Positions 1 through 42,366 are shown, numbered from the stretch's first letter. The stretch: 64,000 nt of DNA from Paramoeba atlantica (GCA_977017575.1 CDRNVI010000054.1:310001-374000); one strand, 5' to 3'. Numbers and translations: made by a program. Notes: generated by a model not told the origin, from the letters alone.

Positions 1-723
1 TTCTGCGGTGTTCTCCCCTCTATCCTAGTTTTTCCTGTTTTCTTTTTAAAAATATAATTTTTTGAAGATCGATAATTTTTTTCTGAAAAATTAGGAATGG
101 CATTTATAGAAATTAATGAGAAGAGGAGTAGTCATAAAATGGGAAATAGTTGCGAAGCGCTCCACTGTATTTAGGAATAAGATCCTATGTTGTGCAGTAT
201 TTTTATTGTAAAAAGCCTACATAGATGAAAGTAATACGATTGCTTGTAAGCCTTTTCCGAAATTTGTATTTTGACATTTTTTTAGACTCAGCTTGAGTTC
301 CACCTCGGCGTATAAACGGTTACATTTTTACTCCCATCACTATGTTCATTAACGCATAGATTTTTTTATGATTCTGCTGTACTCTTGCGCTGAGGAAGAG
401 CCACGAATTTCACGCTGTGGGAAAGTCTCACGCGCAACGCTACCTCCGGAGTTTTACTTATTTCGTATGGTTAAAGATCTGCTAAACACTCCGATTGAAT
501 GGAGGGACGAAATCCCAGCCAGCGAATGGCCTGGTGTACATTTAGACCCATCCGGCGAAGTGACTGCGATTCAATGGAACGCTCTTGAGCTGCGCGGCCC
601 GATGCATTGGGAAAATACCCCTGCTTCTTTGATTTTTTTTGAATGCGGAGGGCATCGTACTCAGTGTAACTATCTGACCGGGGAACTTCAATTGGAGAGT
701 CTTTCTCAGGGATTAACAAAGTT

Positions 724-1953
724 GGTTAAACTGAACCAATATTCGCAAATTTATGAATTTTCAAAATTTCACGTCCCTTTTTGCTTACACTTTAAACTTT
801 TCTCCACTTAAACTTGATTACTTCTTACAAATGGAGGCATACGCAGTGCTCCTTCAAATTTTGTAAGACTTGAAGCAGTGTATCACCCCCATTGCACTTC
901 AAACTTCCGGTACATACCTCTGCGTATGCTTGTATTCGATCCCCCCTCTTCTCCAACTTTCGACCTAGAACATTGCCGTCCCGCTTTAGACGCTTCTTGA
1001 CCATGGAGTTCGCGCACTCCACAGTATTAGTGTGCACACCTTCATTCGTAACCCACTGTCTCTTGTGGTTTACACTTTCCCACTTATATTTGCCGCGGAG
1101 AGACAAATTATGGCGGGCACCATCAGTCCAAATTTTTGTACGACTTCCCGAAGCTAGATTCTGGATGTTCGGAAGAAGGCTCTGAGATGTTCGATTTGGA
1201 ACAGCTTCCATGAGAATTTCAGATAATTTGTTGTCCCTCGTTGTGACCGCTATCGTCTGAGCAATTTGATTACCATCTTGGCGAACACGTTTTGCTCGAT
1301 GGCAACCGCCCCTCTTTCGGACAGAAAAAAAAGTTTCATCGCATTGCATGGTGGTCACCTTGGATCGCAGTCGAACTCGTCGGCGTATATGCGTTGTGGC
1401 CATGAGGGAATCCAGCCATTGACGCAATTTAATCACCGTTTTTTCGCTTAACTCCGTTTCCGCCACTGAAGACGCATGGCGCCCACCCCTAGAGTACAAA
1501 ACGATGTACAGGAGAGTCTGTTTAGCACTTCGCTGGCTCTTGCTGGGCAACAGCGGCCCCATAGCTCCGTACCTCCCTTTACAATGCTTGGGGCAGACCC
1601 ATTTATTCCCGACTAATGCCATGGTGTGCGGAGCTCTGTGATTTTTCTTGTAGCAAATAACTTTCTGCGCCACTAGAGAGTGGTTTTTCATCCAGTCCAG
1701 ACATTGATTCTCACTCCAGGAAGAAATTCTTCTGATCGTAAGTTTCGAACGGCACGAGAACCCACCGCACCCAGTGCACGTCATTAAAAGGTGAGAAGAG
1801 CAATAAACAAGTACTAATGGATTCAAAAAACACAATGCTTATATAAAATTAATGTGCAGAACCATGATTCAGAATAAAAGAAAGGAGCGATAAAACGTTC
1901 AGGTAAAAATTTTGCCAGATTGAGAAAAGTGCGAATATTGGTTCAGTTTCACC
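724..1953 (-). mobile_element. Merlin (IS1595/ISXO2-like) DNA transposon, full length
   Basis: 24-bp TIRs GGT(T/G)AAACTGAACCAATATTCGCA with 1 mismatch; 8-bp TSD ACAAAGTT at 716-723 and 1954-1961. Confidence 0.95.
825..1835 (-). CDS. Merlin/ISXO2-type DDE transposase (likely ATG at 1784)
   Basis: Motifs QCDETFF..RKR, WTDG, VNH, GVHTNTVE; N-terminal CxxC...C; ORF uninterrupted. Confidence 0.92.
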   Translation of the reverse strand: MCFLNPLVLVYCSSHLLMTCTGCGGFSCRSKLTIRRISSWSENQCLDWMKNHSLVAQKVICYKKNHRAPHTMALVGNKWVCPKHCKGRYGAMGPLLPSKSQRSAKQTLLYIVLYSRGGRHASSVAETELSEKTVIKLRQWLDSLMATTHIRRRVRLRSKVTTMQCDETFFSVRKRGGCHRAKRVRQDGNQIAQTIAVTTRDNKLSEILMEAVPNRTSQSLLPNIQNLASGSRTKIWTDGARHNLSLRGKYKWESVNHKRQWVTNEGVHTNTVECANSMVKKRLKRDGNVLGRKLEKRGDRIQAYAEVCTGSLKCNGGDTLLQVLQNLKEHCVCLHL

Positions 1954-2937
1954 ACAAAGTTGGACCTTTCCAAGAACGAGCTGCGCGGTGAAGTGGAGAC
2001 TGCGTTGCTTCCACGATCGCTGGAAAATCTGCATTTGGAATGGAACAGATTTTCAGGCACGTTTAAATTTTCAAACGTACGTATACTGAACTTGGAAGGT
2101 AACGAGGACTTATCGGGCATGTACAATTACACACATAGATTTGACTTTCTTATGTTTAAGTTCACCAGAATTGTCTTAGCATAATATCCACCCCGCGTTT
2201 GGCATATAATATCTGATTAAAAAGGTTGAAATCAAATCAGTAACGTATTTTATCAAAGTCCTTTTTCAGTTCATGCTTACGCTTTAAAAAGTTCACACTT
2301 TTACAAGTTCATACTTTTTACAAGTTTCCCCCTGACTTTGCACATTTTTCTGATTGTTTTCTGAAATTTCTTGATGAGCAAAGTCACGGGGCTATCAAAA
2401 TACTGAAAACCAAAAATTTCATTTCTTTTGTACAAAATCTGGTTTTCACGAGACTGTATACAACGTTCGGGGACTGCGACCTGATTCAAAATATTTTTCC
2501 GGGGTTCTCTCTGTCCTGAAGCGCACGAATCCACCTTTATTTTCCTTTCGCGACTACTTTTTACCTGCTAGACTTTTGTCCCAATATCGATGATATGGGT
2601 CTGTACATTATCTTGGGAGACCCCTGGGAGAAGGATATTTGAAAGCAATTCTTTAAGGGTTGCGTCTTGGAGTACATTGAGGGGTCGTCTGTTGATGGAA
2701 CCTGATGTTAGTTTGTCGGTGAGGACTGTTGTGAGCTACGCGACGATGAAACACAGCTTTTTGAATCATTTTATCAGTTTTAGTTTGGTTCTACTTGGTA
2801 CAAGTAAAAATAAAGTAATATGCAGTAACATTCGAACGCATCTGATGGAAGATTATTTTGAGCAGTCATTCTTACGCATCCGTTCTATTTATTTGCAACC
2901 TCTATTTCTGCGCCCTATTTTCTAACCCCTTTCATCC

Positions 2938-3627
2938 ATGACCCTATTCACACCCCATCAGCTCACTCTTCCATCCCTCTACAAACGGCTTCCTTTATCC
3001 ATCCTTCGCCACCCCCACCCTCTCTCCTCCCCTCCCCCTCCACACCTTCCCCCCTCCAACGTCCTTCCCAACCGCTTCTCTTCCCCCCATGCTGCACCCC
3101 ACCCTCTCCCTCTCCCTTCACTCCTCCACACCCCCGTCGCCTTCTACCGCGCCGCCCACCCCCGGCGCCGGAAGACCACACGTATCGCCAACTGCCGCTC
3201 CATGTGTACGTTTAACTATGTGGTCTACGGCCGACACACGCGGCTACGGGAGACCCACCCCGCGATCGCCGCGGAGTGGGACTACGAGCGCAACCCCCGC
3301 CACCTGCACCCCGCGGTGGTGATCAACACCACCGTGCAGCCCCTGTGGTGGGTGTGCGGGGGGTGTGGGGAGCGCTACTGTATGTCCCTGGACCGTCGAA
3401 CGGTTCTGGGAAAGGGGTGCCCCAAGGGGTGTGGGGTGACGGGGGGGCAGGGGAGTACGGGGGCGATCACGAGTGGAACGTCCTCGAGTGAGGGGAGGAT
3501 AGGAGGTGGGGAGGAGAATGCTCATGGGGAAAAGGGGGAGGAAGGAAAGGTGAAATGGCTTCCGGGGGAGAGCTCGAGAATGTTTCGTTCACAGGCTCCT
3601 ACGCTTCAACCTAAAAATTTTAGTTAG
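2938..3627 (+). CDS. Zinc-ribbon (DUF4379-like treble clef) protein
   Basis: HPAIAAEWDYERN...WWVCGGCGERY....RT..GKGCPKGC matches the 'probable zinc-ribbon' pattern. Confidence 0.7.
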   Translation: MTLFTPHQLTLPSLYKRLPLSILRHPHPLSSPPPPHLPPSNVLPNRFSSPHAAPHPLPLPSLLHTPVAFYRAAHPRRRKTTRIANCRSMCTFNYVVYGRHTRLRETHPAIAAEWDYERNPRHLHPAVVINTTVQPLWWVCGGCGERYCMSLDRRTVLGKGCPKGCGVTGGQGSTGAITSGTSSSEGRIGGGEENAHGEKGEEGKVKWLPGESSRMFRSQAPTLQPKNFS

Positions 3628-4276
3628 CGGAGGTTCAAAAAACCGATTTACACTTGTATTCACGGGGTGTACGAATTTAAGGTTCGTAAAACGTCGCCGA
3701 TTTTGTAAAATTGTAGCGCTTTTCATGCTGAGATGATGAAAAGATTCTACAGAGATTATCAGTTTGATAATATCCGTTTACGATGGCTAATATTCATTTC
3801 CATATTCGATATGGAAATTCTATATTACGCCAAAAAAGCGATAAAATCACCTTGAACTTCAGCGACCCACGTACCAGAATTGTCCCCCATCCAATATTTG
3901 TTCTCGCGGTGATGGGAAATGAGTGATCGAAAAAAGTCTTCATTTTCTCATTTTTAGGAGCTTTTTCAGATATAATTATTTATGAAAGAGACAGCAGTGT
4001 CAACGCGACTTGTGGGTCCTCGATTCTCTTTATTGTCCGCAATGTAGATATCGATAGATGGAGTAACGCATTCGTGTGGAGAAAAGCGCTGCAGTGGTTT
4101 GCCGAACCAATCGGGGTTCCTACAAATAATAGAGCAAAACAAAATAATAGAGCAAAATCACCAGTAATGTTTATTTTGTTTGGGGGAATGTCTGTCCATG
4201 GGAGTGAACCATTCTGTTTCCGGAGAACTCTGAGTAGAGGCTGTGTTGGCGGGTGGCCACTATAGTTTACCCCGTG

Positions 4277-5400
4277 TTAAGCCCAAGGTGCTTGATTTCC
4301 CTCTCAAGAACCTCCAGAGCCGCCCCACATACCTTTGGTTCACCCGCGAAGGTGACATCGTCAAGGTAAGCCCATATTTTGAGGGAGCCTGGGAACTTAG
4401 CCGCCACCTTGGCTATGTCCCCTTGGATTCCTATGGCGAATAGGATTGGGGCCATGGGGTCCCCTTGTTTTACCCCCCCTGGAGCTCATTATGGAGATTC
4501 CTTCCCCAAGGTGTAGGGTGCTAGGCTTCCCGTAGCCGAAGAGGTTGATACCTTCAAGGGGGAGTAGCTTGGAGTCTCCCTTTAGGGCCCTGAAGATGGC
4601 CGACCTCGAGATGCTGTTGAAGGCATTCTCGAGGTCGGCTGCCACTGTGACCTCGCCCGGTCTGTCCCTAAAGTGTTGACGAACACTGTAGATTATGTGT
4701 TCGCACCCTTGGGTGTACTGCGCCCCAAATTGAATGCCTTGAAAGTAGGAGGGTAGGTTTTCTCTCACCTTCTCCAGTATTTATTTATATTTCATGCGGG
4801 GCAAAACCTGAAGAGTGAGCGCCTGACGTACGACGACTGTTATCAACGGCCATTACAGCGCATTCAACGCCGGTCGTACGCAGGGATTCGGCCTATGGCC
4901 ACGCCGCGTGGTCCTCCAGGGAGGTCCTGCAGCACATGGGGGGGTGAAGGGGGCACTGGACTTCCACTGCGGGGGGCGTCGTTGAGAGGCTGCAAGAAGC
5001 CTTTCGGCTACGCAGCGTCGTTGAGAGGCTCTCCCTGGCGTCCATCCAGCGGGGGCACTCGGCGCGTCTGACCCGCTGCACGGGTGTGCGAAGCGGCGGC
5101 CCCTCTTCAACGGAAAGAAGAGTTTCCGGCCCTAGCGCCAGTCGGAAACGGACACACATGAAAGGTTAAGAGTATGCCCGTTTCCGGGAAAAGAAAGGAT
5201 GAGCTAGGGAAAATGTACCAACAAGGTACAGAAACTGTATCTTTATCCCGCAACCTTTAGGAAGCATTGGTAAGAGGAATGGTGCCCAACCGGGGCGCCC
5301 GGCTTGGTAAAGAGTTTGAGGGACGCCCCAGTGAGCAGCTCCCTCATGGTGGGAGGTAGGGAGTTGGACATGATCCCATGCATTATTTGTTTTTCTATTC
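4277..5400 (-). pseudogene. CRE/SLACS-clade non-LTR reverse transcriptase fragment, split by the element at 4785-5241
   Basis: IQFG, ADLENAFNSISR, QGDPMAPILF (after a frameshift), AYLDD, LGL. The upstream part (LLTGASLKLFTKPG...FLKVAG) joins ILEKVRENLP across the insert. Confidence 0.8.
4785..5241 (-). mobile_element. 457-bp SINE-like element with SL-exon-like head and HERO-LINE-like tail
   Basis: 5-bp TSD TTTAT (4780-4784, 5242-5246). 5' end GATACAGTTTCTGTACCTTGTTG/GTAC. 3' end ctcttcaggttttgccccgcatgaaatataa resembles the LINE tail at 5847-5876. Confidence 0.8.
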
Positions 5401-5928
5401 TTATTCTCAAAAGACCTAAAAACAGCGGGAACTGTGCACTACAGTGACATGTTTTAGCTTCAGCTCGGACACTATGTTATCAATGAGCGCTTGGTAGCAG
5501 TGCAACCATCGATGATTTCTACTATGTTCCACGTCTACTGTGTCCATCGTGCAAAATGCATACTATATGGAGAAGACACAAACAGATCCTTTCTGTATCA
5601 GCTGAGTCACAGCAGTCTTCCACGTTGAAGGGCAATCGCCTAATTTGAGCACATCATTAAATACTGGTGCCATGTGGGTTTCGAGCTCTCTCACGGAGTA
5701 CAGAGTTACTTTATCATGAAAAGTGATTCCAGCGGTTTAAATTTTCTAAAGGGGGAGTTCGTCTATTATTAACAACCATCTATTAAACCCCTCCGCATCA
5801 AAAAAGGCACCCACCCTTATTTTTCGCACGAGGGGGGCTAGGGGAATTATATCTATACAGGGCATTACCTGTAGAGTAATAAAGTCTAACAGGACGTACG
5901 CATATGACGTCGCCTGCTAGACCATTTG

Positions 5929-8900
5929 CTAACCAAAGCTTTGGTTGTCCCATAAAGGGGATTCCCTTTTCAGCCAGAGTTGAAAGCTGCTCCGGATCGC
6001 CGTTCGGATGACTTCGACACGGCACTTATCTGAGAGTGCCTTGTCACCCAAAAAGAGACGGTTGATGTGACGCAGCGTCGTAGAAGGGAGACCTCTAGCT
6101 CCAACTTCAAAGCATATCAAGTGGCAGTCTGAGTACCTTATTTTTCGTCGGTGTAGAATATTTATGTACTTTTCTACTTTTCGGCAGTGGGCTTCGTGTA
6201 CGTTTTCCTCCCAGGGCATCGTCAACTCAACGATAAATTCAGTTCCGTCGTTGAGTTTGACGATTCCATCTGGGCGAAGCTGTGTTTCCAGGTCGGACCA
6301 CCATGCGGGTAGTTGACGTAGGTGTGGGAGATCAAAATGTGCCTCTGCGGTATGGGGGGAAGAGAGTATCGCGTTTGCAAAGGTGGAGAGTACACTATCA
6401 TGGCGATATGTGCAACGTCCCTGTTCTAGTGATACCTTGCACGAGGATAAGAGGTGTCGTAATGTTTCCGGTTCTTGTTTACAAATTCGGAATTGTACTG
6501 TATCTGTGCCGTGAATTCCCCATGTCCTCAGCATTGTCCTATTAGGGAGAGTGTTTTGTACCATTAAAGAAGTTGCGAAGCGGCTAAGGGAAGTGCTACG
6601 TAATCCGTTTATCGCGGCGCTGAAATCTTTCGCCTGTTCTTCCTCGGAGGTTATATCCCACCACTGAATAGCGAACGTTGACCTGCGGCGTAGTGCGTTG
6701 ATCATTCGGTCCTCATTAAGCTCAAGAAGAGTTCGTTTTGCGAGGTCGCGATCCTCCAGTATGTGTGTGATGTCACATGCTGGTCGAATTTGGCCTTTCC
6801 TGCGCTTATGTTCTTCAGCCCGTATTCTTTCCTGCAGTGCGGCGGTAACGTTCGGGTCTCGGGACCGCTTCATTTGACAGAGAAGATCAGCTGTACAGTC
6901 TTCCCAGAGTCTGGACAAGCTGCAGATGTTCCATCCACGCTGAGAGTAGATTGCTTCGCTGCATGTAGTTCTAGCCGCATTGATCCACCGTTTCAGGGAG
7001 TGAGTACACATTTTCTGAAGGCGTAAAATAAAGTTTAGCGTGATACATGGGTGTATAGTAAAGGTGAAGCGTAGCCGAGAGATGATTGCGTGCTGATATA
7101 TCCAAATTTTTGATGGGAGGTCGTGGGCCGACTGGTCAATGTTATGAAGCCATCGCTTCAATAAGGGCCTAACTTTCGTGAAAAGGGCTCGGGATTGTTG
7201 AGAACCGGGGGCAATATTCATGCCAAGAAACGTACTTCCTTCGTCGCATATATGCGGTATAGCTTCGTTCTTGATGAAAATTTGAGGACGTCGTGTCATG
7301 TAGCCGGGGTGTTCATCATTTTTCTTGGACGCCATATATTGGACTCTGCACTTTTTGACGTTGATGGAAAGGCCAAGCGAACCGAGTACCGTGGATAGTG
7401 TTTCAACAGCCAGTTGCATTTCTTTTTCACTATTCGTCAGGACCGTGAGATCGTCGGCGTACGCTTTTAGGAAGCTTTTTGGAAATCCAGGGAGGTTCAA
7501 TCCAAATGAGGGAAACGATTTTGCCATGTAACGTAGGGCTAGATCCATAATCACCAGAAAGAGCGTAGGAGAGAGAGTGTCACCTTGTAAGACACCTCGT
7601 TTAGCTGGGATCGCGCTGGACAGACCTTCGTAACATTTAATGCGGGTACTTGCGTCAGTGTATAAACATTGGACGTATTTAATAATGTTTGGGGAGATTC
7701 TCGCCCATTCCAGTGCTTCAAAGATGATGTTGCGGGGGACTGAACCAAAGGCGTTACTGAGGTCTAGCTCGGCCATGCAGTAGTTCAACTTGTTCTTCCG
7801 GTAGTGGCGTAGGAGCTCTGAGAGGGATTGCGTATGTTCGAGAGTACCGTTAATGGCGGGGAGAAAGCCTTTCTGTATCTTGGGGTCAATGACAGAGGCT
7901 TCAATTAGGAATTTCGTCATTTTCCGGCTGATGATGGAATGCAGGAGTTTCCCTAGTACGCTAGTCAGGCCGATGGGACGCCAGCTTTGTGGGTTGTCAG
8001 GCTCCCCTTTTTTGTAAATGAGGCGAGTGACGGATATTTTCCACGACGTCGGACATGTGCTGAAGCGCACTAGCGCGTTGAAGACGTTTGCCATGTGGGT
8101 GTGGGAGCTGTGGCATCGCTTTAGAGTCTGGTACGTAATGGAGTCCTGGCCTGGAGCACTGCTGTTTTTCTTTGATGTGAGAGCGTTCGAAATGTCGATT
8201 GAAGCCAGTTCGTCCCAGGTCATTTCTGCCAGAGGACGGATTCCGAGGACGTCGTGGGGTGGTAAGTGATGCACTGTAGTGGGGTCCGTAAGTAATGTTG
8301 TGAACACACTTTCCACTTTCTGTACATTGCAAGTCGGATAGGCCGGTACACTTTCTGCTTCTGTGCTTTTGTCCAAGGTTTGACTCGCAGCCGTCCATGG
8401 ATTGCGGTTGAATTGTTGAAGTGCCCAGCGACTTTCCAGTTCCCGTTTTTGGGCCATGGCTTCTGCGCTGTATATACGTTCCGCCTTTTTGGTTTCCTTA
8501 ATCTTTTGTTTCAACGCCATGCGGGGAGCCTTGCCGTGTGTGTATCGCAGCTTCATTTGTAGTTGTTTTACATGTCGAGAGAAGGAAAAGGCAACTTTTT
8601 CGCTTTCTAATGGACGGACTTTCCCCTTTGTGTGTCCTCGAGCCGTTCGGATAATGAAACCCTTCCTGGAGTCGACGTCTCGCGCCACTTCATATGCCGA
8701 CACCGCTAGTATTGCACTCAGTAGTTCTGCGTTATGGACGGCGGGGAGTGCGTCGCCAGAGACAGTGAGCAAGGTGTTGCATCTGTGGAGGGCCCTACGT
8801 TCCACCTCGTGCCAGTGCGCGTCAGCCAAGTTTATGTTTAACTTGCCCCCCTGGATGTATCGTGCCGTGCGGAAAAGGTACTCCGTCTCGTCGAGTGGTC

Positions 8901-9276
8901 TCGGAGAGGAAGCGGAAGTGGGGGGGTTAAGTTCGGGGTGTTCTTGCTCTTGTCCTGCGTTGGGGCTCCCCTCAGAGTCTCCTTCGATTCCCTGATCGAG
9001 GGATGGTCCATAGATTTTGCAGCATGGATGGCTGCATTTGAGTTGACTTATGCATCGATGTTGGCATGGGTGCGTCCGCTTCAAGGAGGAGGCGTGGTCA
9101 CGCGAAATAATCTCGTATGGTGGAAGTGTTGGGACCGTTTGGGGCTTTGATGGCTGTACTTCTTCTTTGTCGTCGGTGCGAAGGAGCAGAACGATCCGAA
9201 ACGCCGATAACCCAGGGACCGCTCTCCCGTTCAGTACCTTATTTACCGCTTTACCCATTGAGCTAGGTGATGGCGG
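5929..9276 (-). CDS. LINE ORF, 3' part: RT, zinc knuckle and restriction-like endonuclease
   Basis: SAPGQD, WRPIGL, QKGFL..GTLEH, DLSNAFGSV, GVLQGDTLSP, AYADD; xRICKQEPETLRHLLSSC (first Cys is Phe), RHDSVL, RPDG, ELTMPWE, RKVEKY, EVGARG. Confidence 0.95.
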   Translation of the reverse strand, partial: PPSPSSMGKAVNKVLNGRAVPGLSAFRIVLLLRTDDKEEVQPSKPQTVPTLPPYEIISRDHASSLKRTHPCQHRCISQLKCSHPCCKIYGPSLDQGIEGDSEGSPNAGQEQEHPELNPPTSASSPRPLDETEYLFRTARYIQGGKLNINLADAHWHEVERRALHRCNTLLTVSGDALPAVHNAELLSAILAVSAYEVARDVDSRKGFIIRTARGHTKGKVRPLESEKVAFSFSRHVKQLQMKLRYTHGKAPRMALKQKIKETKKAERIYSAEAMAQKRELESRWALQQFNRNPWTAASQTLDKSTEAESVPAYPTCNVQKVESVFTTLLTDPTTVHHLPPHDVLGIRPLAEMTWDELASIDISNALTSKKNSSAPGQDSITYQTLKRCHSSHTHMANVFNALVRFSTCPTSWKISVTRLIYKKGEPDNPQSWRPIGLTSVLGKLLHSIISRKMTKFLIEASVIDPKIQKGFLPAINGTLEHTQSLSELLRHYRKNKLNYCMAELDLSNAFGSVPRNIIFEALEWARISPNIIKYVQCLYTDASTRIKCYEGLSSAIPAKRGVLQGDTLSPTLFLVIMDLALRYMAKSFPSFGLNLPGFPKSFLKAYADDLTVLTNSEKEMQLAVETLSTVLGSLGLSINVKKCRVQYMASKKNDEHPGYMTRRPQIFIKNEAIPHICDEGSTFLGMNIAPGSQQSRALFTKVRPLLKRWLHNIDQSAHDLPSKIWIYQHAIISRLRFTFTIHPCITLNFILRLQKMCTHSLKRWINAARTTCSEAIYSQRGWNICSLSRLWEDCTADLLCQMKRSRDPNVTAALQERIRAEEHKRRKGQIRPACDITHILEDRDLAKRTLLELNEDRMINALRRRSTFAIQWWDITSEEEQAKDFSAAINGLRSTSLSRFATSLMVQNTLPNRTMLRTWGIHGTDTVQFRICKQEPETLRHLLSSCKVSLEQGRCTYRHDSVLSTFANAILSSPHTAEAHFDLPHLRQLPAWWSDLETQLRPDGIVKLNDGTEFIVELTMPWEENVHEAHCRKVEKYINILHRRKIRYSDCHLICFEVGARGLPSTTLRHINRLFLGDKALSDKCRVEVIRTAIRSSFQLWLKRESPLWDNQSFG

Positions 9277-9770
9277 ATTGTCAACACCAACGCACCACTT
9301 TTTTTCCTAAAAAATAATTTTCTTGTCATTTCCAGTGCACCACTTTTTCTTAAAAACTGTATTCTCATTTCCAATGCACCATCAATTATTTAAAGAAGTA
9401 TTATTTTATAATATCCTTCGGATCTACACTACAAATGCGCCATTATTCAAGACTCAGTCATTACGATCGTAATCGTATTCAATCACTCTTTACATCTGGC
9501 GAGAGTCGGCGAAGCATAGCTCGCATAATTGGCAAAAGTCACAGCACTGTTTGTCGCGAGTTGGCGCGTAATGCAAGAAGGGGTCAGCGCTATGAGGGGA
9601 CGAGGGCACAGCGCATTTCGAAAAGACGCCTCTCGTGTAAAAAGGTCAAGCCTCACAAGATACAAGGCCTTTTGGAAGAGGAAGTCAGCTCTCGACTTCA
9701 AAAGAAGCACAGCCCGGAACAGATTGCAAATACGATCCGTAGCTGTCGTACCGCCTCGACTTCTACCATA

Positions 9771-11326
9771 CAGGGGTGCAAATCAGATGCTGGGGGGGTC
9801 TAAAATTAGCAATGTTTGCGCAATTTTGGAAAATAATAGATCATTCGAGAGCTCTCGCAGAGATCTATGTTTTGGCGCTATTATCACGTTAAAAGAAAAC
9901 AAATTTGAAAAAGATATTTTTTTAAAGGTTTTTTACCCCCCTAAAAGTTGCAGATTTTTCAATTTTTGCAGTTTTTTCCGTGTTTTTTTTTGTTTTTCAG
10001 CTCACTATAATGCCGCAAAAGCGATCCCTCTCTAAGCAAAACAGTAAAAGCTTATCTGATAGATCACACGAACCCCGGGGGCACACAAAATATTCACACA
10101 GGATGCTTCTCGTTAAAGATTACGAGAATACAAACTCCTACAATGCCACTTGCCAAAGACAAGGCGTCCACGACAGCACTGTTAAGTTGTGGGTTAAGCG
10201 ATTTGAGGAAACCGGGGATGTTGAACGTGCTACGCCTCCTCGCGAACGCACTGACAACGCCGGAGCTTCTTGAGGCATGCCGCGAAATTATTGACGCGTC
10301 CAACGCGACAAGTGCGCGAGGTTGTCCCTCGTGGAGTTTTATTCTTCGAGAGGTTAGGAAAAGGGGTTTCTCCTGCAGCAGGCCGGCCCTAGTAAATTTT
10401 TTGAAGGACGAAGGGATGATCCAACGATTTTTTTCTAAAGGCCTGTTCTTAACTGAAGTTCACAAGGCCAAGCGACTAACATTTGCACTGAAAATGCAGA
10501 AGTGGTCCGTCGCACAGCTTCGTCACATTATTTGGTGTGACGAAAAAAAGTTTACTTGTCAACTTGGGCGCGAAAGCCGTTCTTACATTTGCCGAGCGAG
10601 TGACCCCCCCAAGCCACCCCTAAAAGCTGCGCAAAAATGGTTTGGGGGGGATGGAGTAAACGTTTGGATGGGTATAAGCCTTATTTATGGAGTTTTTTAT
10701 CACGTCTTTCCCGACAGGGTCAGAAATGGGAAAGTTACAATTACTTCAAATGTTTTTAAAGCAGCTATGACAAAAAGGGGGGGTTTCTTAAGTTACTTGA
10801 AGCGTCATAGCGGTACTAGAGTTGCAATGAATAATGCTCCTTGTCACAATGGCACCTTTAAAACCTTTCGAGAAAACCAAGTCTTTGTTTTAGACTTTCC
10901 CCCAAAATCCCCAGATCTTAACCCTATTGAAAACATTTGGGACATCATGGACACCTTTATTAAAGATGGTACAAACCCAGAAAATAGGACTGAAGTTTTG
11001 TATTCTATTGAAAAGGCGTTTGATTACATTAAAACAGATGGTCATGACATGCTCATAAATACTTTAAACAGCATGCCGCGGCGTTTCGACATAGTAGTAG
11101 AAAAAAAAGGGGAAAGTTGTAATTATTGAACGTACAAAATTTTTCTTTCACTTTTTGCATTTTGACGTTTTTGGGCTTCTCCTCAGTTGACCACCCCCTT
11201 ACACCCCGGGAAACCGCCTATCCAAATACATAGATCTCTGCGAGAGCTCTCGAATGCGCTATTATTTTCCAAAATTGCGCAAACATTGTTAATTTTAGAC
11301 CCCCCAGCATCTGATTTGCACCCCTG
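9771..11326 (+). mobile_element. Tc1/mariner (IS630-like) element nested in IS30
   Basis: About 100-bp TIRs starting CAGGGGTGCAAATCAGATGCTGGGGGG; TA TSD at 9769-9770 and 11327-11328. Confidence 0.93.
10010..11129 (+). pseudogene. Tc1-like transposase with a frameshift near 10245 and second catalytic D apparently changed to N
   Basis: HTH (STVKLWVKRFEETG), IIWCDEKKF, AMNNAPCH, PPKSPDLNPIENIW. A polypyrimidine tract plus AG lies 9 nt before the ATG. Confidence 0.88.
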
Positions 11327-12247
11327 TATATCGCCATATTCGTCGCAACGCGTCCTTAGGCGGCAAGTTGTACACCCATTTGCGGATCCAGCGAAAGAGG
11401 CCATACCGTCGTCGCACCAGACCTGATCGCAGCGCGATTCCCAACCGAACGCCACTTGAAAATCGACCAGAAATTGTTAATAAGCGTCGGCGCTACGGCG
11501 ATTGGGAAGCAGACTTGGTCGAGGGTCGAGGACATACCGGATATATTCTTACCCTGTGCGAGCGTAAGAGTCGCTTCCTTGTTCTTCGCAAGTTGGAATC
11601 TAAGCACGCGAAGGGGGTAAACAAACAAATTGAAGACGGGTTAAAGAATTACAAGGTTCAAACAATCACATACGACAACGGAGCAGACACGGAGGCACCA
11701 TGAAGAAGTAAACAAAAAATTGAAATGCAAGTCTTTCTTTTGCGCTCCGTATCATTCGTGGGAGAAAGGGTCTGTGGAACATGCAAACGGTTTGATCCGA
11801 CAATTCCATCAGAAAACCGAATCTTTTGAGAATTTGAACCAAAGTGAATTAAACAAAACAGCATTGGAATTGAACACTCGTCCTCGGAAATTATTAAATT
11901 ATCGTTCTCCAATGGATTTTGTGAATGAACTGCGTAAGTAAAAGAAGCTAAGTAAGCAAAGGTACGTGAGAAAGCTTGTAAAGTTAGCCTGCTAGTGTTG
12001 GAAATTTAATGACAATAAATTTAAGCATTTTGTAAAGGTGAAGAAATTCTTGTCTAATAAAGTTTCTTACTCAGATCTTACACTTGTATTACGCTTTCTT
12101 TAAATACTCTGGATAAGTTTTTATGTTGAAAGGAAAAAGGAACGATGTTCAACTATGGTGAGGCGCAGAAAAAGGGAATGACGGTCGACTATGGTGAAAA
12201 AAGTGGTGCGCTGGAGTTGACAATGGGGTGGTGCACTGGAGTTGAAC

Positions 12248-13498
12248 ATCCGGGGATGCGTAGTGGTTGTATAATTCCAGGCGGCTGTCGTGAAAAAGAG
12301 ATACCCAGTTCGCGTGGCGAGAAATGTGACTTGTTGAGTCTACTCTACTAACTTCTAAAAAGTCACACGCTCTCTTTTCCATAAGTTCGTCTACGGTACA
12401 CGTTTCTACGACGATGTCGTGTGCTGCACTTTTCCCATTGAGCGCTTTGGACAGGGCGGCTTCAGCCCCCTGGGGGGAAGGGATACGACTACGCACAAGT
12501 TGGCTTACGCAAGCTGCATGCACATCCGGGAAATATCTCCATGTGTTGTCGTTGACGAGGTGGAGTTTGACAGGTTTTGACCGGGACTGGATAAAGTGGA
12601 AACGTTGCTTGTGTCGGTTATGGGTTACGGGATGCGTGGGGTCCTGGGGCGGCGGGAGATACTGTGACGGGCTGTCGGGAGTTTGTGTGGGAATCTTGGT
12701 ACCCTCGGATTCATCCGAATGTAAATGGGTGTCCAGTTGTGATGGGGGTAAGAGGCTTCCTTGTTCAAGCGGCGGGCTTTGTATTCGCCCTACGCTGTGC
12801 GCTTGTTGGAAAACCCAGGATGGGACTTCGTCATCGCCATTCTCATTCCGCGGACTGTGTTGGTGTGCTGTGGAAGATGAGTCCAAGAGAATGATACTTT
12901 CCGGTGCCTTGTTTTTGGGAGTCGGGATGGCTGGTTCCCTGGCAACGGCACGGTCAGCTGTCGTAGTGGTTGTGTTTAGGGACGGTGTGACGAAATTCTT
13001 GGGAAGGGTACATGGGCCGGTGGGTAGAGTATTCTGCCCATCCAGTTTGCTTATCGGTGTGTCAAGCGAAGTCAACGGTGTGCCAGTGCGTTTGCAGCAA
13101 GGATGGCCGCACCCTGCTTTGTTCTTACATTTATGTTTACAGGGCTCGACACGGTCTGCTTGTTCGGAAGCGGGGCCTAGGCCTTGCTTGCAGCACACGT
13201 GCTTATATTGATCTTTACTCTTGCAGATATGCTTGCATACTCTAGTTAAGGCGTGGACCTGAAGTTGTGTTGGAGATTTAGGTTTGGGGAGGCTTTGGGA
13301 GTCCGGAGTTTTATTAATTTCCGGAGTTTGATATGGAACGCCGTTGAAAAGTAGGAATTTGGCAAGCGAGCAGGCAGTTGATGCGACGGCACCACCGACG
13401 GTAACAGTGGGTGATTTTTGATGGGGAGTAACCTCCTTGGGTGGGGGTACATGTAAATCGTGTTCGTCTTTTGGACAGGGTGCTATTGTGTACGACAA
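12248..13498 (-). CDS. LINE ORF, 5' part (continuous with 5929-9276 once IS30 is removed)
   Basis: The join reads HYASPD-PPSPSSMGKAVNK in frame. Contains CxHxCx5CxHxCCK motifs. Confidence 0.85.
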
Positions 13499-14163
13499 GC
13501 GTTCCTGTCCGGTGCTGCTGTGAGGTCGTACGGTTACCGCCGGGGTTGAGGGAGTGCCGTTAGATTACGTTTGCAACATGGGTGCCCGCAGGTCTGTTTG
13601 TTTTTACAGACATGCTTACAGGGTGTGCTACGTTGTACCGGCATTACACTCACAGCCGTGATCACCTTTACGTCTTCTCTTGCATCCACCGGTGCGTCAC
13701 ATCACTTATTGTTGTACGTATCCGGTTTTGCTACGCGTACCAGGTGTCGTTTGCAGCATGGGTGTTCACAGTGAGCTTTGTCCTTGCAGCGGTGTTTGCA
13801 TTCCGGAACCGTTTGTTGTGTGGTTGGGGGGACGGGGTGAGGGGGAAGTTCGTTTGTGTGAGGAGTGACCAGGATATGTGGCCGCGTTACACCCCGCTTG
13901 CAACAGGGGTGTCCGCAGGTGCTTTTGTCCTTACAAGGATGTTTGCATGGAGCTGGGGGTACTTCTCCTGTGTCGCTGGTAAGGGACTCATTGCTCTTTT
14001 GGGATATGAGAGCCTGGACGGTTCGGGTAGCAGATTTTGCAACCCTGTCTGTGAGAGTGCCTTTCAGGGACAGGTTTTTGTTTTGGTTAGACACGTCGCG
14101 TGGTCTCTTAGGAGAGTCCTGCGACGCCTGGTGTGTGCCCTTCCCTAGTAGTAAGCAAAACAT
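13499..14163 (-). pseudogene. LINE ORF extreme N-terminus with three Cys/His repeats; in-frame TGA (13702-13704) and a frameshift near 13550
   Basis: ATG 35 nt after the SL-like head; CKHPCKDKSTCGHPCCKR, CKHRCKDKAHCEHPCCKR, CKHVCKNKQTCGHPCCKR. Confidence 0.75.
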
Positions 14164-14608
14164 GTCGTTGTAAAGGGTAGGGAAAAGAAAAAAAAGTCAA
14201 CAAGGTACAGAAACGTTATCGCACCACTTTATCGTGCAAAATTTTGAGATCTGTACGTTCCCGTTGTCTTTAGGTCATTTCGAAAAATATAAAAAAGTTG
14301 AATGTATTTTTTAAAAAAAATCACTTTTCATGCCAACAAATACGTATCGACTCCCCAGGGGTGGTCTTACAGAAAGTGGAAAAGTGTTATGGCGCATGAG
14401 GCTTGGCCACGGGGTTGCGATAAGGTAACTAGCCCGCGGGTTTAATGTCAATGTGAAACATATTGGAAAATATTTGAAAAACAATTCGCCTGAAATTCTT
14501 TACACTCTGAGCCCTGAAGTAAAAAAAGAATCCAAAGACACTTTGTTATTCTTCCATCCAACTCAATTACATGTGTTTCGTACATTAAAACATTAAAAAA
14601 AGTACCAT

Positions 14609-14934: not shown

Positions 14935-15057
14935 TCTTTCTCTAAAATATACGTATTCGTTTCTTTTTGTTTCATTTCTTCACGCGCAAAGTCTTTATGT
15001 TGAGATCTGCAAAATGCAACAAAAATCAACCCAAACGGACATTTGGCTGAAAACTTA

Positions 15058-15845: not shown

Positions 15846-17546
15846 ATGCCCCCCACCCCCCTCCTCCTCAGCCGCATGGCCTCCGTCCTCCACACCGCCC
15901 TCACCTCCCCCCTCCCCCCCCGCACCTACACCCGCCACGCCCCCTTCGTCGACACCGTGAAGGCGCTGGTCACCAGCGGCCGCGGCGGGGACGGCCGCAG
16001 TGCCTTCCTCCACGCCTGCAACGACAACCTCGGGGGGCCGGGGGGCGGGGACGGGGGCGCCGGCGGGGACGTCTACCTCGCGGCCACCCCCCGCAGGCCG
16101 GATCTCGCGCACATCGACGGCATGGGGTACGCCCTGCACGCGAGCCCCGGCAACGCGGGGGCGGCGAAGACCCTGTGTGGGGGGAACGGGGCCGATCTCG
16201 TGTTGGAAGTCCCCCTGGGGACGACCGTGCGGGACCTCGACGGCAACCACACCCTGTTTGATCTCACCCAGGAGGGGGGGGTGCTGCTGCTGGAGGGGGG
16301 GCGAGGGGGGAAGGGGAACGTGCGGTTCGCCCACAGCCGGAACCAGGCCCCCCGGGAGTGTACCCAGGGACTCCCGGGGCAGAGTATGCTGGTGCAGCTG
16401 GAGCTGCGTACGGCGTGTGAGGTCGCGTTGGTGGGGCTGCCGAATGTGGGGAAGAGTGCGTTGCTGGGGGCGTTGACGACGGCGCGACCGAGGGTGGCGC
16501 CGTACCCCTATACGACCCGGGAAGTGTATGTGGGGTATCTGCATAAAGCCTATGGTGGGGCAAGTATCCGGGTGGCGGATTTACCCGCACTTACCGAGGG
16601 GGCATATGCGGGGAAAGGCCTCGGCTCGGGATTGCTGCGGCACGCGGAACGCGCAAACACGCTTGTTTACATAGTGGATCTCGCCAACGTCTACCACAGT
16701 GAGCTCCAGGGTCGATACTTGGAACCCTGGGAAGTAGTGGAGGTGCTGCGAAGGGAGATGGAGTACTACGACTCCGGATTGTCTACCCGAGCCGTGGCGA
16801 TTTGGGCCACCAAAGCGGATCTCGCCTATGATAACCACGGCAGAGACACGGCTGTGGTGTGTGAGGAACTCCGGAAACGATTTTCCGGGGAGCTGCCTGT
16901 TTTTCCGGTTACGACTATAGCCTCGGAGGAAAATCTCGTGGGACAAGATGCCTCCTTGACTTTCGCCCTACGTCACTTGGGTCCCATAGCGTTCAGTCGC
17001 GCGCAGGCCGCGGAGAGTTACCGCTCCGACTGTGAGGCCACGGCGTGTCAGGAGCGGACAGAGCGACAAGAACGGGACAAACTGTGGGTACAGGGTCAGC
17101 AAGGGGAGATAATAGAGAAGCTTCAAGAAGAGGATGCCAGCGATCGCGGCACAAAGATGCAGGGTCGGTGGTTAGAAACGGAAACGGGGAACCGCAATCC
17201 AAAACAACTTAGCAAAGAGCGGACTCTAGCAGGAGACTCGTCGGTGTCAGGTAGTCCAAACGAAGACACAAACAGAATTTCTGGGAATGCTGATACGGAA
17301 GCGGCCGAAGAAGAGATCGTCGTGGAGGAAGCTCCAAGTCTGGTGGATCAGCAGCTGGATAATCTCTACGGTGCCGTAAGCACATCTAACATGACTCCAC
17401 ATGAGGCGTATACCACGATGGAGAGCCAATTGCCGTTTCTCCGCGACAAATCCCATCAAGGGGCCTACTGGAAGCTGACCAGACGCCGAGGTGAGAGGCT
17501 TACAGATGAAATTCTCCGTACACCCAAACCGCGGGGGCCACGATAG
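15846..17546 (+). CDS. MTG2: Obg/CgtA family GTPase, probably mitochondrial
   Basis: FVD....V.SG.GGDG...F, GGDGGAGGDV, GGRGGKGN..F, G1 GLPNVGKS, YPYTT, G3 DLPA, G4 TKAD. Confidence 0.9.
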   Translation: MPPTPLLLSRMASVLHTALTSPLPPRTYTRHAPFVDTVKALVTSGRGGDGRSAFLHACNDNLGGPGGGDGGAGGDVYLAATPRRPDLAHIDGMGYALHASPGNAGAAKTLCGGNGADLVLEVPLGTTVRDLDGNHTLFDLTQEGGVLLLEGGRGGKGNVRFAHSRNQAPRECTQGLPGQSMLVQLELRTACEVALVGLPNVGKSALLGALTTARPRVAPYPYTTREVYVGYLHKAYGGASIRVADLPALTEGAYAGKGLGSGLLRHAERANTLVYIVDLANVYHSELQGRYLEPWEVVEVLRREMEYYDSGLSTRAVAIWATKADLAYDNHGRDTAVVCEELRKRFSGELPVFPVTTIASEENLVGQDASLTFALRHLGPIAFSRAQAAESYRSDCEATACQERTERQERDKLWVQGQQGEIIEKLQEEDASDRGTKMQGRWLETETGNRNPKQLSKERTLAGDSSVSGSPNEDTNRISGNADTEAAEEEIVVEEAPSLVDQQLDNLYGAVSTSNMTPHEAYTTMESQLPFLRDKSHQGAYWKLTRRRGERLTDEILRTPKPRGPR

Positions 17547-17688
17547 CACACAAAGAAGAACATAAGGTTTACAACCTGAAGGCACATTTCGGTACTGATT
17601 CTACCTTGTATTAGCCCTATTTTTGAACCGAATAAGACAAATGTACGATCTCTGTAAAGTATGATCTCTGTAAAGTATGATCTATGTA

Positions 17689-18756
17689 CAGGGGGTGGCA
17701 CGGAAATATGGGGGGGTCAAAATTTTTACAACTTGTCCAATTTTGGAAAGTAGCACCGCATTCGAGAGCTCTCGCAGAGATACGTTCACCTGCTATTGCG
17801 TTTCCCGTGTTTTTAATTTTTTTAATTTTGGACAAAAAAATACATTAAAATATACGTCAATATTTTATGTATTTTCCCTCTATTTTTTGACCTTTCCGCC
17901 GCGTTATGCCACATAAAAGGGCTTATTCCAATACAAGGGTGTACAGCACCGTGATCGTCATTGTTACAGTCCTCGTGTACAGCTTATAGTCACCCACCGC
18001 ATACTTTTAGTAAAGAAGTATGAAGAAACTGGGTCAAAAATAATTTATGCCCACAAAAGCTCATTATGCCCCACAAATCGGTCAGAATTGCGATCGACGA
18101 TCGCATCTGGGATTGAATTGTTGAAAGGAGAACAGAACAAAACATTTTTACACACTTCAAAAACTGTTCCACCTCATATTAAGATTACATTACAAAAAAA
18201 TGGAGATCATTGTGGATATTAAATGACATACTGTACCCCCCCCTGTTTATAATAGCCTCGACCCCTCCCCCCCTTTATAGGTTCTTTTTTTGGCAAACTG
18301 GGGAAGATTTTTTTTAATTTTCTTGCACTGTCTTAAATATTTTGATATTTATTTTCATATAGTTCTTCGAGGTATGGTGCGTGTTCGTGCTGGACATTTT
18401 ACTTTGGAAGAGCGCCGGGGCCCACTTAGCGATTGAATAGTTCCTGGTTCCTCGCTCCCAAATGTAGGGCGATTTCTGTGCCAACTCTTAATCTTCAATC
18501 GCCCTCCCCCCTTTATAGGTTCATTTGGGCAAAAGCGAGGCTATTATAAACCGGGGGGGTACAGTATTTTTCAAAATTCGAAACTTGCAATTCCTGTTTT
18601 CAGCCCCTTTGGCATAGGGACCTACCCCCCTGGATACGGGAAACGCAATATCAGGTGACACGTATCTCTGCGAGAGCTCTCGAATGCGGTGCTACTTTCC
18701 AAATTGGACAAGTTATAAAAATTTTGACCCCCCTCATATTTTCGTGTCACCCCCTG
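17689..18756. mobile_element. Non-autonomous Tc1-type element
   Basis: About 105-bp TIRs starting CAGGGGGTGGCACG with the inner CGAGAGCTCTCG palindrome; TA TSD. Confidence 0.85.
18231..18564. mobile_element. MITE (TIR CTGTACCCCCC, TA TSD) nested in 17689-18756; right half repeated at 28180-28316
   Basis: Inverted termini seen directly; near-identical sequence at 28180-28316. Confidence 0.75.
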
Positions 18757-41299: not shown

Positions 41300-42132
41300 A
41301 ATGATGTAATTACCGCGTAATGCCCTGTGCACCATTGATTCTCGACACCCGCTCGTCGAGCTCTTGCTGCCTGAGAAAAGGAGATTAGCTGGCGGGTTGT
41401 GTGATACAAGCTTCCCCGGGCTCCTGCTCAAAGAACAGGAGCAGCGTATTTTTGTGAGTTCAAGTTTCGTGTGCGCCAGTTTCACAGGTCCACCGAGCAG
41501 GTCTGAGGTCTGGAGGACCGACCCGGAACCTCCCGCAGGGCATCAGCTCCCGTACCCGGCGTGGTCGTTAAACACGTCGTTGCCTCCTTGAACAAGCGGA
41601 AACTGGTAGAGGCGTTCGGATCTCGCACCCCCGATCGTCAGTGAGGGTCCTGGCTTGATAATCATGCGCCTGTTATTGTGCAGAGACAATATCCTTACTA
41701 CAACACCCGATATGGTTGGCACATAATCCGTCCACAGCGAATGTCGCTAACGAGGGTTTAGCACGGACTCTGTCGGTACAGGGATCCAACTCGTCTCTCT
41801 TTACGCAGCAGTAGGGGTGCACTGCAAACGACCGCTGCTTCGGTGTAAGACAAGACAAAACGACGCCCAATGTTCTTCCGGGGAGGCCATCATCGTGCAT
41901 GGCTCCCCGGAAAGCGCGAGACACAGAGGGTCGGGAAGGGAAGAAAACTCACTCAAGGAGTGAGCTGGGGACGGATGAAGAGTCAAAAATACGTCCCCTA
42001 CTTCCACGACAAAGAGGGACAGTTCCCACTAGCCGTCAACGGGAAACGGGCATGAAAGAGAAAATGTATGCCTGTTTCTAGCATAAGAAAAGAAGGGCTA
42101 GCAAGTCTGTACCAAGGTACAGAAACTGTATC
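41300..42132 (-). mobile_element. SL-headed element (copy B); 3' end not determined
   Basis: Head GATACAGTTTCTGTACCTTG/GTACAG at 42113-42132. About 480 nt are homologous to 48845-49321; the downstream body is homologous to 53040-53400. Confidence 0.7.
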
Positions 42133-42366
42133 TGTATGACATCTCACTCATGTCTTCCCACTTCTCTGCGTAAAATGATCACCAACTGTTTCACTCAATT
42201 CGCGCCATACTTTGTTCTGATATTACTTGCATTCCCCAAGCTTGCATGGGCAAAATTTTGTTTATTTATGTTACTGTAGTAGTCGTATCCTCTACTGTAG
42301 TTTTCCTACGTTTATAAACTTTCATAATCAAAGTTTAACTAAATTAAAGTTACTTTTGCTCATCAA

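Follow-up and report, generated by a model that had tools for sequence, protein, structure and literature searches.

A short non-coding retroposon beginning with part of a spliced-leader exon in a kinetoplastid genome

The genome of a free-living trypanosome relative, a kinetoplastid, contains a short non-coding element whose 5' end is a truncated spliced-leader (SL) exon. We describe this element, A, in a stretch of 64,000 nucleotides recorded under Paramoeba atlantica (GCA_977017575.1, CDRNVI010000054.1:310001-374000), which we call the window and number from its first letter. A occupies positions 4785-5246 on the minus strand (462 bp, counting a 5' ATAAA as SL sequence), resembles short interspersed nuclear elements (SINEs) and ends in a tail shared with the genome's own long interspersed nuclear elements (LINEs). 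It is probably a non-autonomous retroposon carried by this genome's R2-like LINEs, which have a restriction-like endonuclease (RLE). Its SL head would then be the scar of trans-splicing, neither a piece of an SL RNA gene nor a promoter.

Read on the minus strand from 5246 downward, A begins with ATAAAGATACAGTTTCTGTACCTTGTTG, then GTACATTTTCCCTAG; at its other end, down to 4785, it reads CTCTTCAGGTTTTGCCCCGCATGAAATATAA, with ATAAA next. The first 28 nt (5219-5246) are identical to the last 28 nt of the exon of an SL gene found on a metagenome contig, L001, and the G at 5247 extends the match to 29 nt. An earlier note on this DNA, made from the sequence alone, had recognised an SL-like 23-mer followed by GT (5241-5217) and set the limits of the element at 4785-5241. 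What it saw is genuine SL exon and its 3' limit is kept; the exon part is 28-29 nt long rather than 23, from 5246/5247 down to 5219, and the 5' limit moves to 5246. The 23-mer plus GT is confined to elements of this kind; the window contains it twice, one of the two with two mismatches, against none expected by chance. A 12-nt core of the head occurs exactly three times, always on the minus strand, at 5237, 42128 and 49317.

Contigs from the organism's public sequencing runs match the window to 5216 and then continue (reverse complement) with TGAGAAGCTTCGAACTCTAAG.., passing from the exon end into an SL intron. The head thus matches an SL RNA of this organism, and the earlier note's own ground for rejection, a head without such a match, does not apply. 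The intron read from these run contigs starts GTATGAGAAGCTTCGAAC / GTATGAGAAGCT and is of kinetoplastid type, GTATGAGAAGCT being the start of the SL intron in trypanosomatids. Contig L001, the single locus returned by a metagenome scan for the SL and the SL gene of a relative, has the same exon and intron start and gives the complete 38-nt exon, ending ..AACGATAAAGATACAGTTTCTGTACCTTGTTG. The SL string was absent from the literature in a text search of papers. A holds 28-29 of the 38 exon nucleotides, the first ~10 being missing, and beyond the exon it agrees with the intron in GTA only, among ~33 readable intron nucleotides.

We compared the window with nine loci of the same organism's ENA assembly ERZ24900291, reached through homologues of the protein of LINE1, a LINE ~600 bp from A; the sample covers ~230 kb in all. 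It contains 17 SL-headed entries, with A counted in both alleles and 15 other elements beside it. All 17 heads stop at the last base of the exon. Behind that base, six or more unrelated sequences follow. SINE families A, C, D and E continue with GTAC.., family B with TTCATC.., the 5' untranslated regions (UTRs) of LINEs with AATTATTTTC.., T-runs or ACTTTTTT.., and one LINE, at L006, with an SL relic. Eight of the entries are 5' ends of autonomous R2-like LINEs, one of them in the window. Since the junction is exon-precise and its partners are many and unrelated, it points to trans-splicing of RNA; a fragment of an SL RNA gene would leave a different pattern. These elements have the structure of a retrocopy with a relict SL, a 5'-truncated SL exon joined at its last base to retroposed sequence. 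The sequences flanking the heads are unrelated at every locus, which argues against site-specific insertion.

The lengths of the heads cluster at 27-29 nt, with extremes of 17 nt in LINE1 and at least 32 nt in a LINE at L009; a strict limit of 28 nt, once considered, was dropped because of these two. At L006 (9681-9728) a LINE starts with the SL and then a 10-nt SL relic, a stack that suggests two rounds of splicing and copying. Several LINE ends have other neighbours: in L010 (2712-2733) an SL-like fragment (AGATACAGTTTCT) precedes a LINE head, in L008 (9880-9917) a LINE with a 27-nt SL head directly follows a (TG)n microsatellite, and in L003 a LINE tail runs into (AT)n. Tail-to-head tandems also occur, in which the tail of one SINE directly abuts the shortened SL head of the next (L009 ~14940-15005; contig joint 5230>4782). 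They may reflect a preference for insertion at tails.

The sister SINE families of A amount to seven copies in the sample. Two copies lie in the window, both on the minus strand: one of family B (48845-49321), 95-98% identical to the copies of family D, and one of family C (41655-42133). B and C are 72% alike across their full length, and A is 71-75% identical to both over its first ~150 nt and shares with them also the last ~30 nt. The common 5' region includes a structured module at 5090-5188 of the minus strand, with a 15-bp hairpin (5188-5143) and two short hairpins. Families B, C, D and E share it, at 71-81% identity between A and B, C and D. Its consensus fold contains two compensatory pairs, one in the 15-bp hairpin, and for the first 190 nt of A the fold has z = -4.3. 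Among the elements examined, this module of ~110 nt is confined to the SINE families.

The 3' end of A, in contrast, is common to SINEs and LINEs. At 4785-4815 on the minus strand it consists of CTCT, an imperfect hairpin and ATGAAATATAA. Over its last ~32-55 nt A aligns with the 3' UTR of LINE1 next to it, and no shuffled sequence reached the observed score (0/5000 shuffles for the last 40 nt, 0/2000 for the last 130 nt); the resemblance to a LINE tail that the earlier note had seen is thus borne out. The tail aligns also to a second LINE fragment at 47014-47045. In LINE1, this fragment, the LINEs of L003 and L007 and SINEs B, C and D, the motif takes the form CTCT, short hairpin, ATGA(A/T)NAT, with the variant ATAGATAT in LINE1. 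The stem varies between families, and part of the variation is compensatory.

A second motif links A to the LINEs. A 33-nt internal stem-loop, GCUGCAGGACC-loop-GGACCACGCGGCGU, at 4901-4933 on the minus strand, is found again in several LINE families, ~100 nt from the start of the 5' UTR, with LINE1 (14122-14093) among them; its match to L006 9790-9826 and L007 15175-15139 is 86%. Instances are present in eight elements, with three of the four pairs of the apical stem showing compensatory change, and SINEs B, C and D have a variant of it. Known structured RNAs were not recovered. Rfam gives nothing in the window at gathering score, nothing in A at E<=5 and nothing in L003, L005 and L007 at E<=0.05, so no ribozyme, SL, tRNA, 7SL or 5S family is among the matches at those thresholds, and ARAGORN finds no tRNA. 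By these two programs, A does not have the small-RNA head with an internal RNA polymerase III (Pol III) promoter that defines a classical SINE.

A is multi-copy. In run X1 each position of its specific body (5036-5073) is covered by three to five other contigs, and other contigs contain pieces of further copies, ~85-90% alike, among them one variant without 61 bp and one tail-to-head tandem. The contig depth of the body is 800-1400 against 35-55 for unique flanks, figures that are depths from contigs and not copy numbers. This evidence makes A an older multi-copy family, and the single copy that would have spoken against the earlier note is not what we find: in each run several other contigs cover the A-specific body. 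The ~230 kb of loci compared contain no second A-type copy. The allelic ENA contig L002, 98.8% identical to the window over this locus, holds A too (14132-14598), with 7 differences in 467 nt.

The sister family D has been mobile recently, as its copies are 98.8-99.65% identical to each other and one of them is a presence/absence polymorphism. In L002 a 576-bp insert (17346-17921) separates the sequences that correspond to window positions 1-2030 and 2036-3200, and the empty site at 2030-2036 of the plus strand reads AAAATCT GCATT TGGAATGG. GCATT is replaced by the element at the filled site, a 5-bp target deletion.

The insertion of A itself can be read from its host gene, a decayed reverse transcriptase (RT) on the minus strand. 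The upstream part (5247-5476) and the downstream part (4270-4780) are brought into one frame, over 4400-4780, once the 462 bp are excised; further down from the insertion the host RT is frameshifted. A 72-aa piece of it (4270-4485) matches RVT_1 with an E value of 3.9e-6, a weak match; CRE, the clade to which the earlier note assigned this RT, is a putative label. The earlier note's statement that A interrupts an RT-like gene therefore stands, as does its view that A encodes nothing useful: the open reading frames (ORFs) within A are 33-88 aa long, stop-to-stop stretches reach at most 92 aa, and the three ORFs tested have no Pfam match.

Whether A has a target-site duplication (TSD) of its own, as the earlier note held, is less simple. 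The 5-nt repeat TTTAT is present, and its copy after the tail (ATAAA on the element strand, 4780-4784) is candidate target sequence, TSD copy or tail end. Its 5' copy (5242-5246) is identical to the SL at that position, so the repeat is no independent proof of a TSD. Sequence and host frame are compatible with three arrangements: a 23-nt head and a 5-bp TSD, 5-nt microhomology at a blunt insertion, or a 5-bp target deletion and an insert of 467 bp. In a tandem A-type copy elsewhere (the contig joint 5230>4782) the point of the tail end reads ..ATATAAATA. The two readable empty sites of the SL-headed system have no TSD and show small deletions, of 5 bp for the D-type SINE and 0-1 bp for LINE1.

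Between SL exon and body, A carries a short cassette (5204-5218, minus strand) made of GTAC, a pyrimidine tract and TAG, in appearance a splice donor and, behind it, a trans-splice acceptor. Families A, C, D and E keep it, all LINE heads lack it, and B lacks it exactly. D copies read SL part, GTACATTTTCCCTTTAG, then TTCATC.., one of them without the G of GT. In B exactly the 17 nt of D from the exon end to the pyrimidine tract and TAG are missing, and the 23-nt SL part abuts TTCATC directly. These limits, the exon end on one side and a pyrimidine tract plus AG on the other, make B look like a copy of a D-type RNA that was given a new SL at the inner AG acceptor.

LINE1, the partner-type element of the window, is full length and split in two on the minus strand. 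Its 3' part (5845-9272) comprises RT, zf-RVT, CCHC and PD..E..K endonuclease motifs, the 3' UTR and the tail (5847-5876); its 5' part (12259-14214) has the 17-nt SL head (14214-14198), the 5' UTR with the internal stem-loop and an N-terminal ORF. The ORF at 9258-5929 matches RVT_1 (E 9.1e-30) and zf-RVT in Pfam. R2 proteins are its closest solved relatives (E 1.5e-29, with one alignment over residues 355-1056), and its translation ends with CCHC and the RPD..E..K motifs of an RLE. LINE1 is thus an R2-like element of the RLE type; the homologues matched by its protein bear no clade names, and HERO, the earlier note's label, is putative. The two parts are separated by a 2986-bp insertion on the plus strand (9273-12258) with a Tc1/mariner-type transposase ORF (10143-11129; DDE_3, HTH_Tnp_Tc3_2). 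The family consensus in the reads runs from 9272 into 12259-12288, and the homologous proteins P0006 and P0001 align across both parts. LINE1 in turn lies inside another multi-copy repeat (flanks 14215-14250 and 5767-5844), whose intact copies define its head, its 3' end at 5845 and an insertion with no TSD and 0-1 bp lost.

Some neighbouring features deserve mention. The repeat to the left of LINE1 reads ..TTTTGCACGATAAAGTGGTG.., including 9 nt identical to SL positions 8-16, and L009 has a similar 5' half at 9323 (AATTTGAACGATAAAG); from these two 5' halves, the 5' end of the organism's SL may differ from that of L001. A further R2-like RT fragment lies at 5566-5736, between the LINE1 tail and the host RT of A (60% identical to P0003 over 40 aa). 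The window of this eukaryotic genome also contains an IS1595/ISXO2-like DDE transposase ORF and a DUF4379 treble-clef zinc-finger ORF (825-1835 and 2938-3627). Exact-protein look-ups for LINE1, the OBG gene and two A ORFs found none of them on record.

The following sequence of events would account for these elements. Copies in sense orientation within polycistronic units of RNA polymerase II would yield read-through RNA, and SL trans-splicing at the AG acceptor would set the 5' end of the template. A LINE protein, presumably from one of the R2-like families, would recognise the common 3' motif (CTCT, hairpin, ATGA..AT) and perhaps the internal stem-loop too, nick the target and reverse-transcribe the RNA in place (target-primed). 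The complementary DNA (cDNA), or the joining of its 5' end, would usually end 9-12 nt short of the SL 5' end. Such an early stop would make new DNA copies begin with ~23-29 nt of SL exon and may explain the loss of its first ~10 nt.

Several points weigh against this account. Transcription and trans-splicing of A are predicted from DNA, and none of the listed runs is on record as RNA. DNA copies read TTG, not AG, before GTAC; a DNA copy could thus not regain the same head by canonical trans-splicing, and master loci with AG|GTAC would be needed. No such locus (the cassette GTACATTTTCCC.. without SL relic) occurs in the ~230 kb sample. GGTACA is conserved in four SINE families and absent from the LINEs, which is unexpected for random acceptor-side sequence, and a link to stem-loop I of SL RNA is possible: in the minimum-free-energy fold GGUACA after the exon pairs with UGUACC of the SL, much as the real intron start does. 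In addition, the heads cluster at 27-29 nt, the tail hairpin is imperfect in A, and the further A copies are known from contig statistics.

The earlier note had proposed a SINE whose head derives from SL RNA. A short, non-coding, multi-copy retroposon with a LINE tail and genuine SL exon at its head is supported; the derivation from SL RNA is not. On that derivation, the exon and the intron start with stem-loop I would have been copied together, for example by template switching of the RT as in U6/L1 chimeras, and fused to a LINE-tailed body. The GTA after the exon is indeed the intron start, GGUACA would pair with UGUACC as GGUAUG does (the two differences are transitions that turn wobble into Watson-Crick pairs), and A, C, D and E have a conserved cassette that no LINE head carries. 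The similarity ends, however, after 3-5 nt of the ~33 readable intron nucleotides, 28-29 of 38 exon nucleotides are present with the first ~10 missing, and no Sm-site-like motif was noticed, although no formal search was made. One D copy lacks the G of GT, and B lacks the cassette altogether. Moreover, the same truncated exon is joined to at least six unrelated partners, including LINE 5' UTRs without any intron letters, so that their identical 5' limit would call for another mechanism. We consider an SL-RNA-derived head unlikely.

Two further explanations start from the LINEs. A could be a LINE that has lost its ORF by internal deletion, in the manner of short internally deleted elements (SIDEs) or of RIME relative to ingi, and no separate composite element. 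The SL head, the 33-nt 5' UTR motif and the 3' tail are what A and the LINEs have in common; beyond those three pieces there is no detectable similarity to the eight LINE 5' ends or the 3' UTRs examined, and the ~110-nt 5' module is shared with other SINE families only, which makes this quite improbable. Alternatively, the heads may come from the target: the ancestors would be SL-gene-specific LINEs like CRE, SLACS and CZAR, and ~28 nt of co-transcribed or duplicated target would have become heritable in LINEs and passengers. The insertion point of CZAR and SLACS, after nt 11 and before nt 12 of a mini-exon of 39 nt, leaves 28 nt downstream (PMC5814959), and the modal head of 27-29 nt equals that downstream part (PMC5814959); the LINEs are also of the RLE type, like the CRE clade (PMC12278014). 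Yet the heads span 17 to at least 32 nt, a soft limit, every one ends exactly at the splice donor with no intron, and 0/17 entries lie in an SL gene. CRE-type insertions have the 28 nt 3' of the element, not 5', and CRE membership of our LINEs is putative. We regard a target-derived head as very unlikely. The trans-splicing scar remains the probable origin of the SL sequence in A.

Literature searches found no description of an SL-headed SINE or LINE. R2 SIDEs, short internally deleted R2 elements, ride on an RLE-type LINE; they retain its 5' ribozyme and remain in the 28S site. A resembles them as an RLE-LINE passenger that retains elements for 5'-end formation and 3' recognition; unlike them, it has no ribozyme that we could find, is inserted at dispersed sites, and its body is mostly not LINE-derived. 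Classical SINEs are similar in size, non-coding, present in many copies and equipped with a LINE-derived tail, but have heads from tRNA, 7SL, 5S or small nuclear RNA, whereas no small-RNA head or Pol III promoter was detected in A.

The non-autonomous retroposons described from kinetoplastids are Pr77-headed relatives of ingi (PMC8190864, PMC12278014), and Bodo saltans is reported to have CRE, ingi, VIPER and TATE elements (PMC4728078). The pairs RIME/ingi and NARTc/L1Tc, together with SIDER, are likewise short non-coding kinetoplastid retroposons that depend on a LINE through common 5' and 3' cis elements (PMC8190864, PMC12278014). They belong, however, to the ingi clade with an apurinic/apyrimidinic (AP) endonuclease, while the partner-type LINE here is R2-like with an RLE. 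Their 5' end is the Pr77 promoter/ribozyme, which yields unspliced transcripts, and their 3' end a poly(A); A has an SL exon relic and no poly(A). They make TSDs, and the two empty sites of the present system show none. CRE, SLACS and CZAR are also RLE-type kinetoplastid LINEs tied to the SL (PMC5814959, PMC12278014, PMC4728078), but they sit inside SL RNA genes, at nt 11/12, and the elements here are dispersed with the SL at their own 5' end.

The nearest analogue of A appears to be the relict SLs of dinoflagellate retrogenes, where a 5'-truncated, DNA-encoded SL is taken as proof of a trans-spliced template and repeated rounds stack the relics (PMC6050394, PMC5585692). In both cases a truncated SL starts the retroposed sequence, and the LINE at L006 shows a comparable stack. 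The dinoflagellate carriers are retrocopies of protein-coding mRNAs; here, in a kinetoplastid, a LINE family carries the relics, together with its non-coding passengers.

A broader proposal is speculative, and we think it rather doubtful that its three parts hold jointly. In this bodonid, the RLE LINEs and their passengers would use the host's SL trans-splicing to make their 5' ends, in place of a ribozyme or promoter. The SL part, the GGUACA hairpin, the pyrimidine tract and AG would form a working mimic of stem-loop I plus an acceptor, which would control re-splicing or renewal of the element. SL-headed LINEs would, finally, be an intermediate towards CRE, SLACS and CZAR: with its end complementary to the final ~28 nt of the SL, a cDNA would be directed to nt 11/12 of SL genes.

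If the trans-splicing account is true, this would be the first LINE/passenger system described whose 5' end is set by host trans-splicing. In a kinetoplastid, the SL relic would then mark sequences copied through RNA, a built-in label like the DinoSL relics of dinoflagellates, and the SL-headed LINEs would offer a testable route to the evolution of the SL-gene-specific retrotransposons of trypanosomes. Moreover, gene expression in this genome depends on trans-splice acceptors, and the elements spread such sites through it ready-made.
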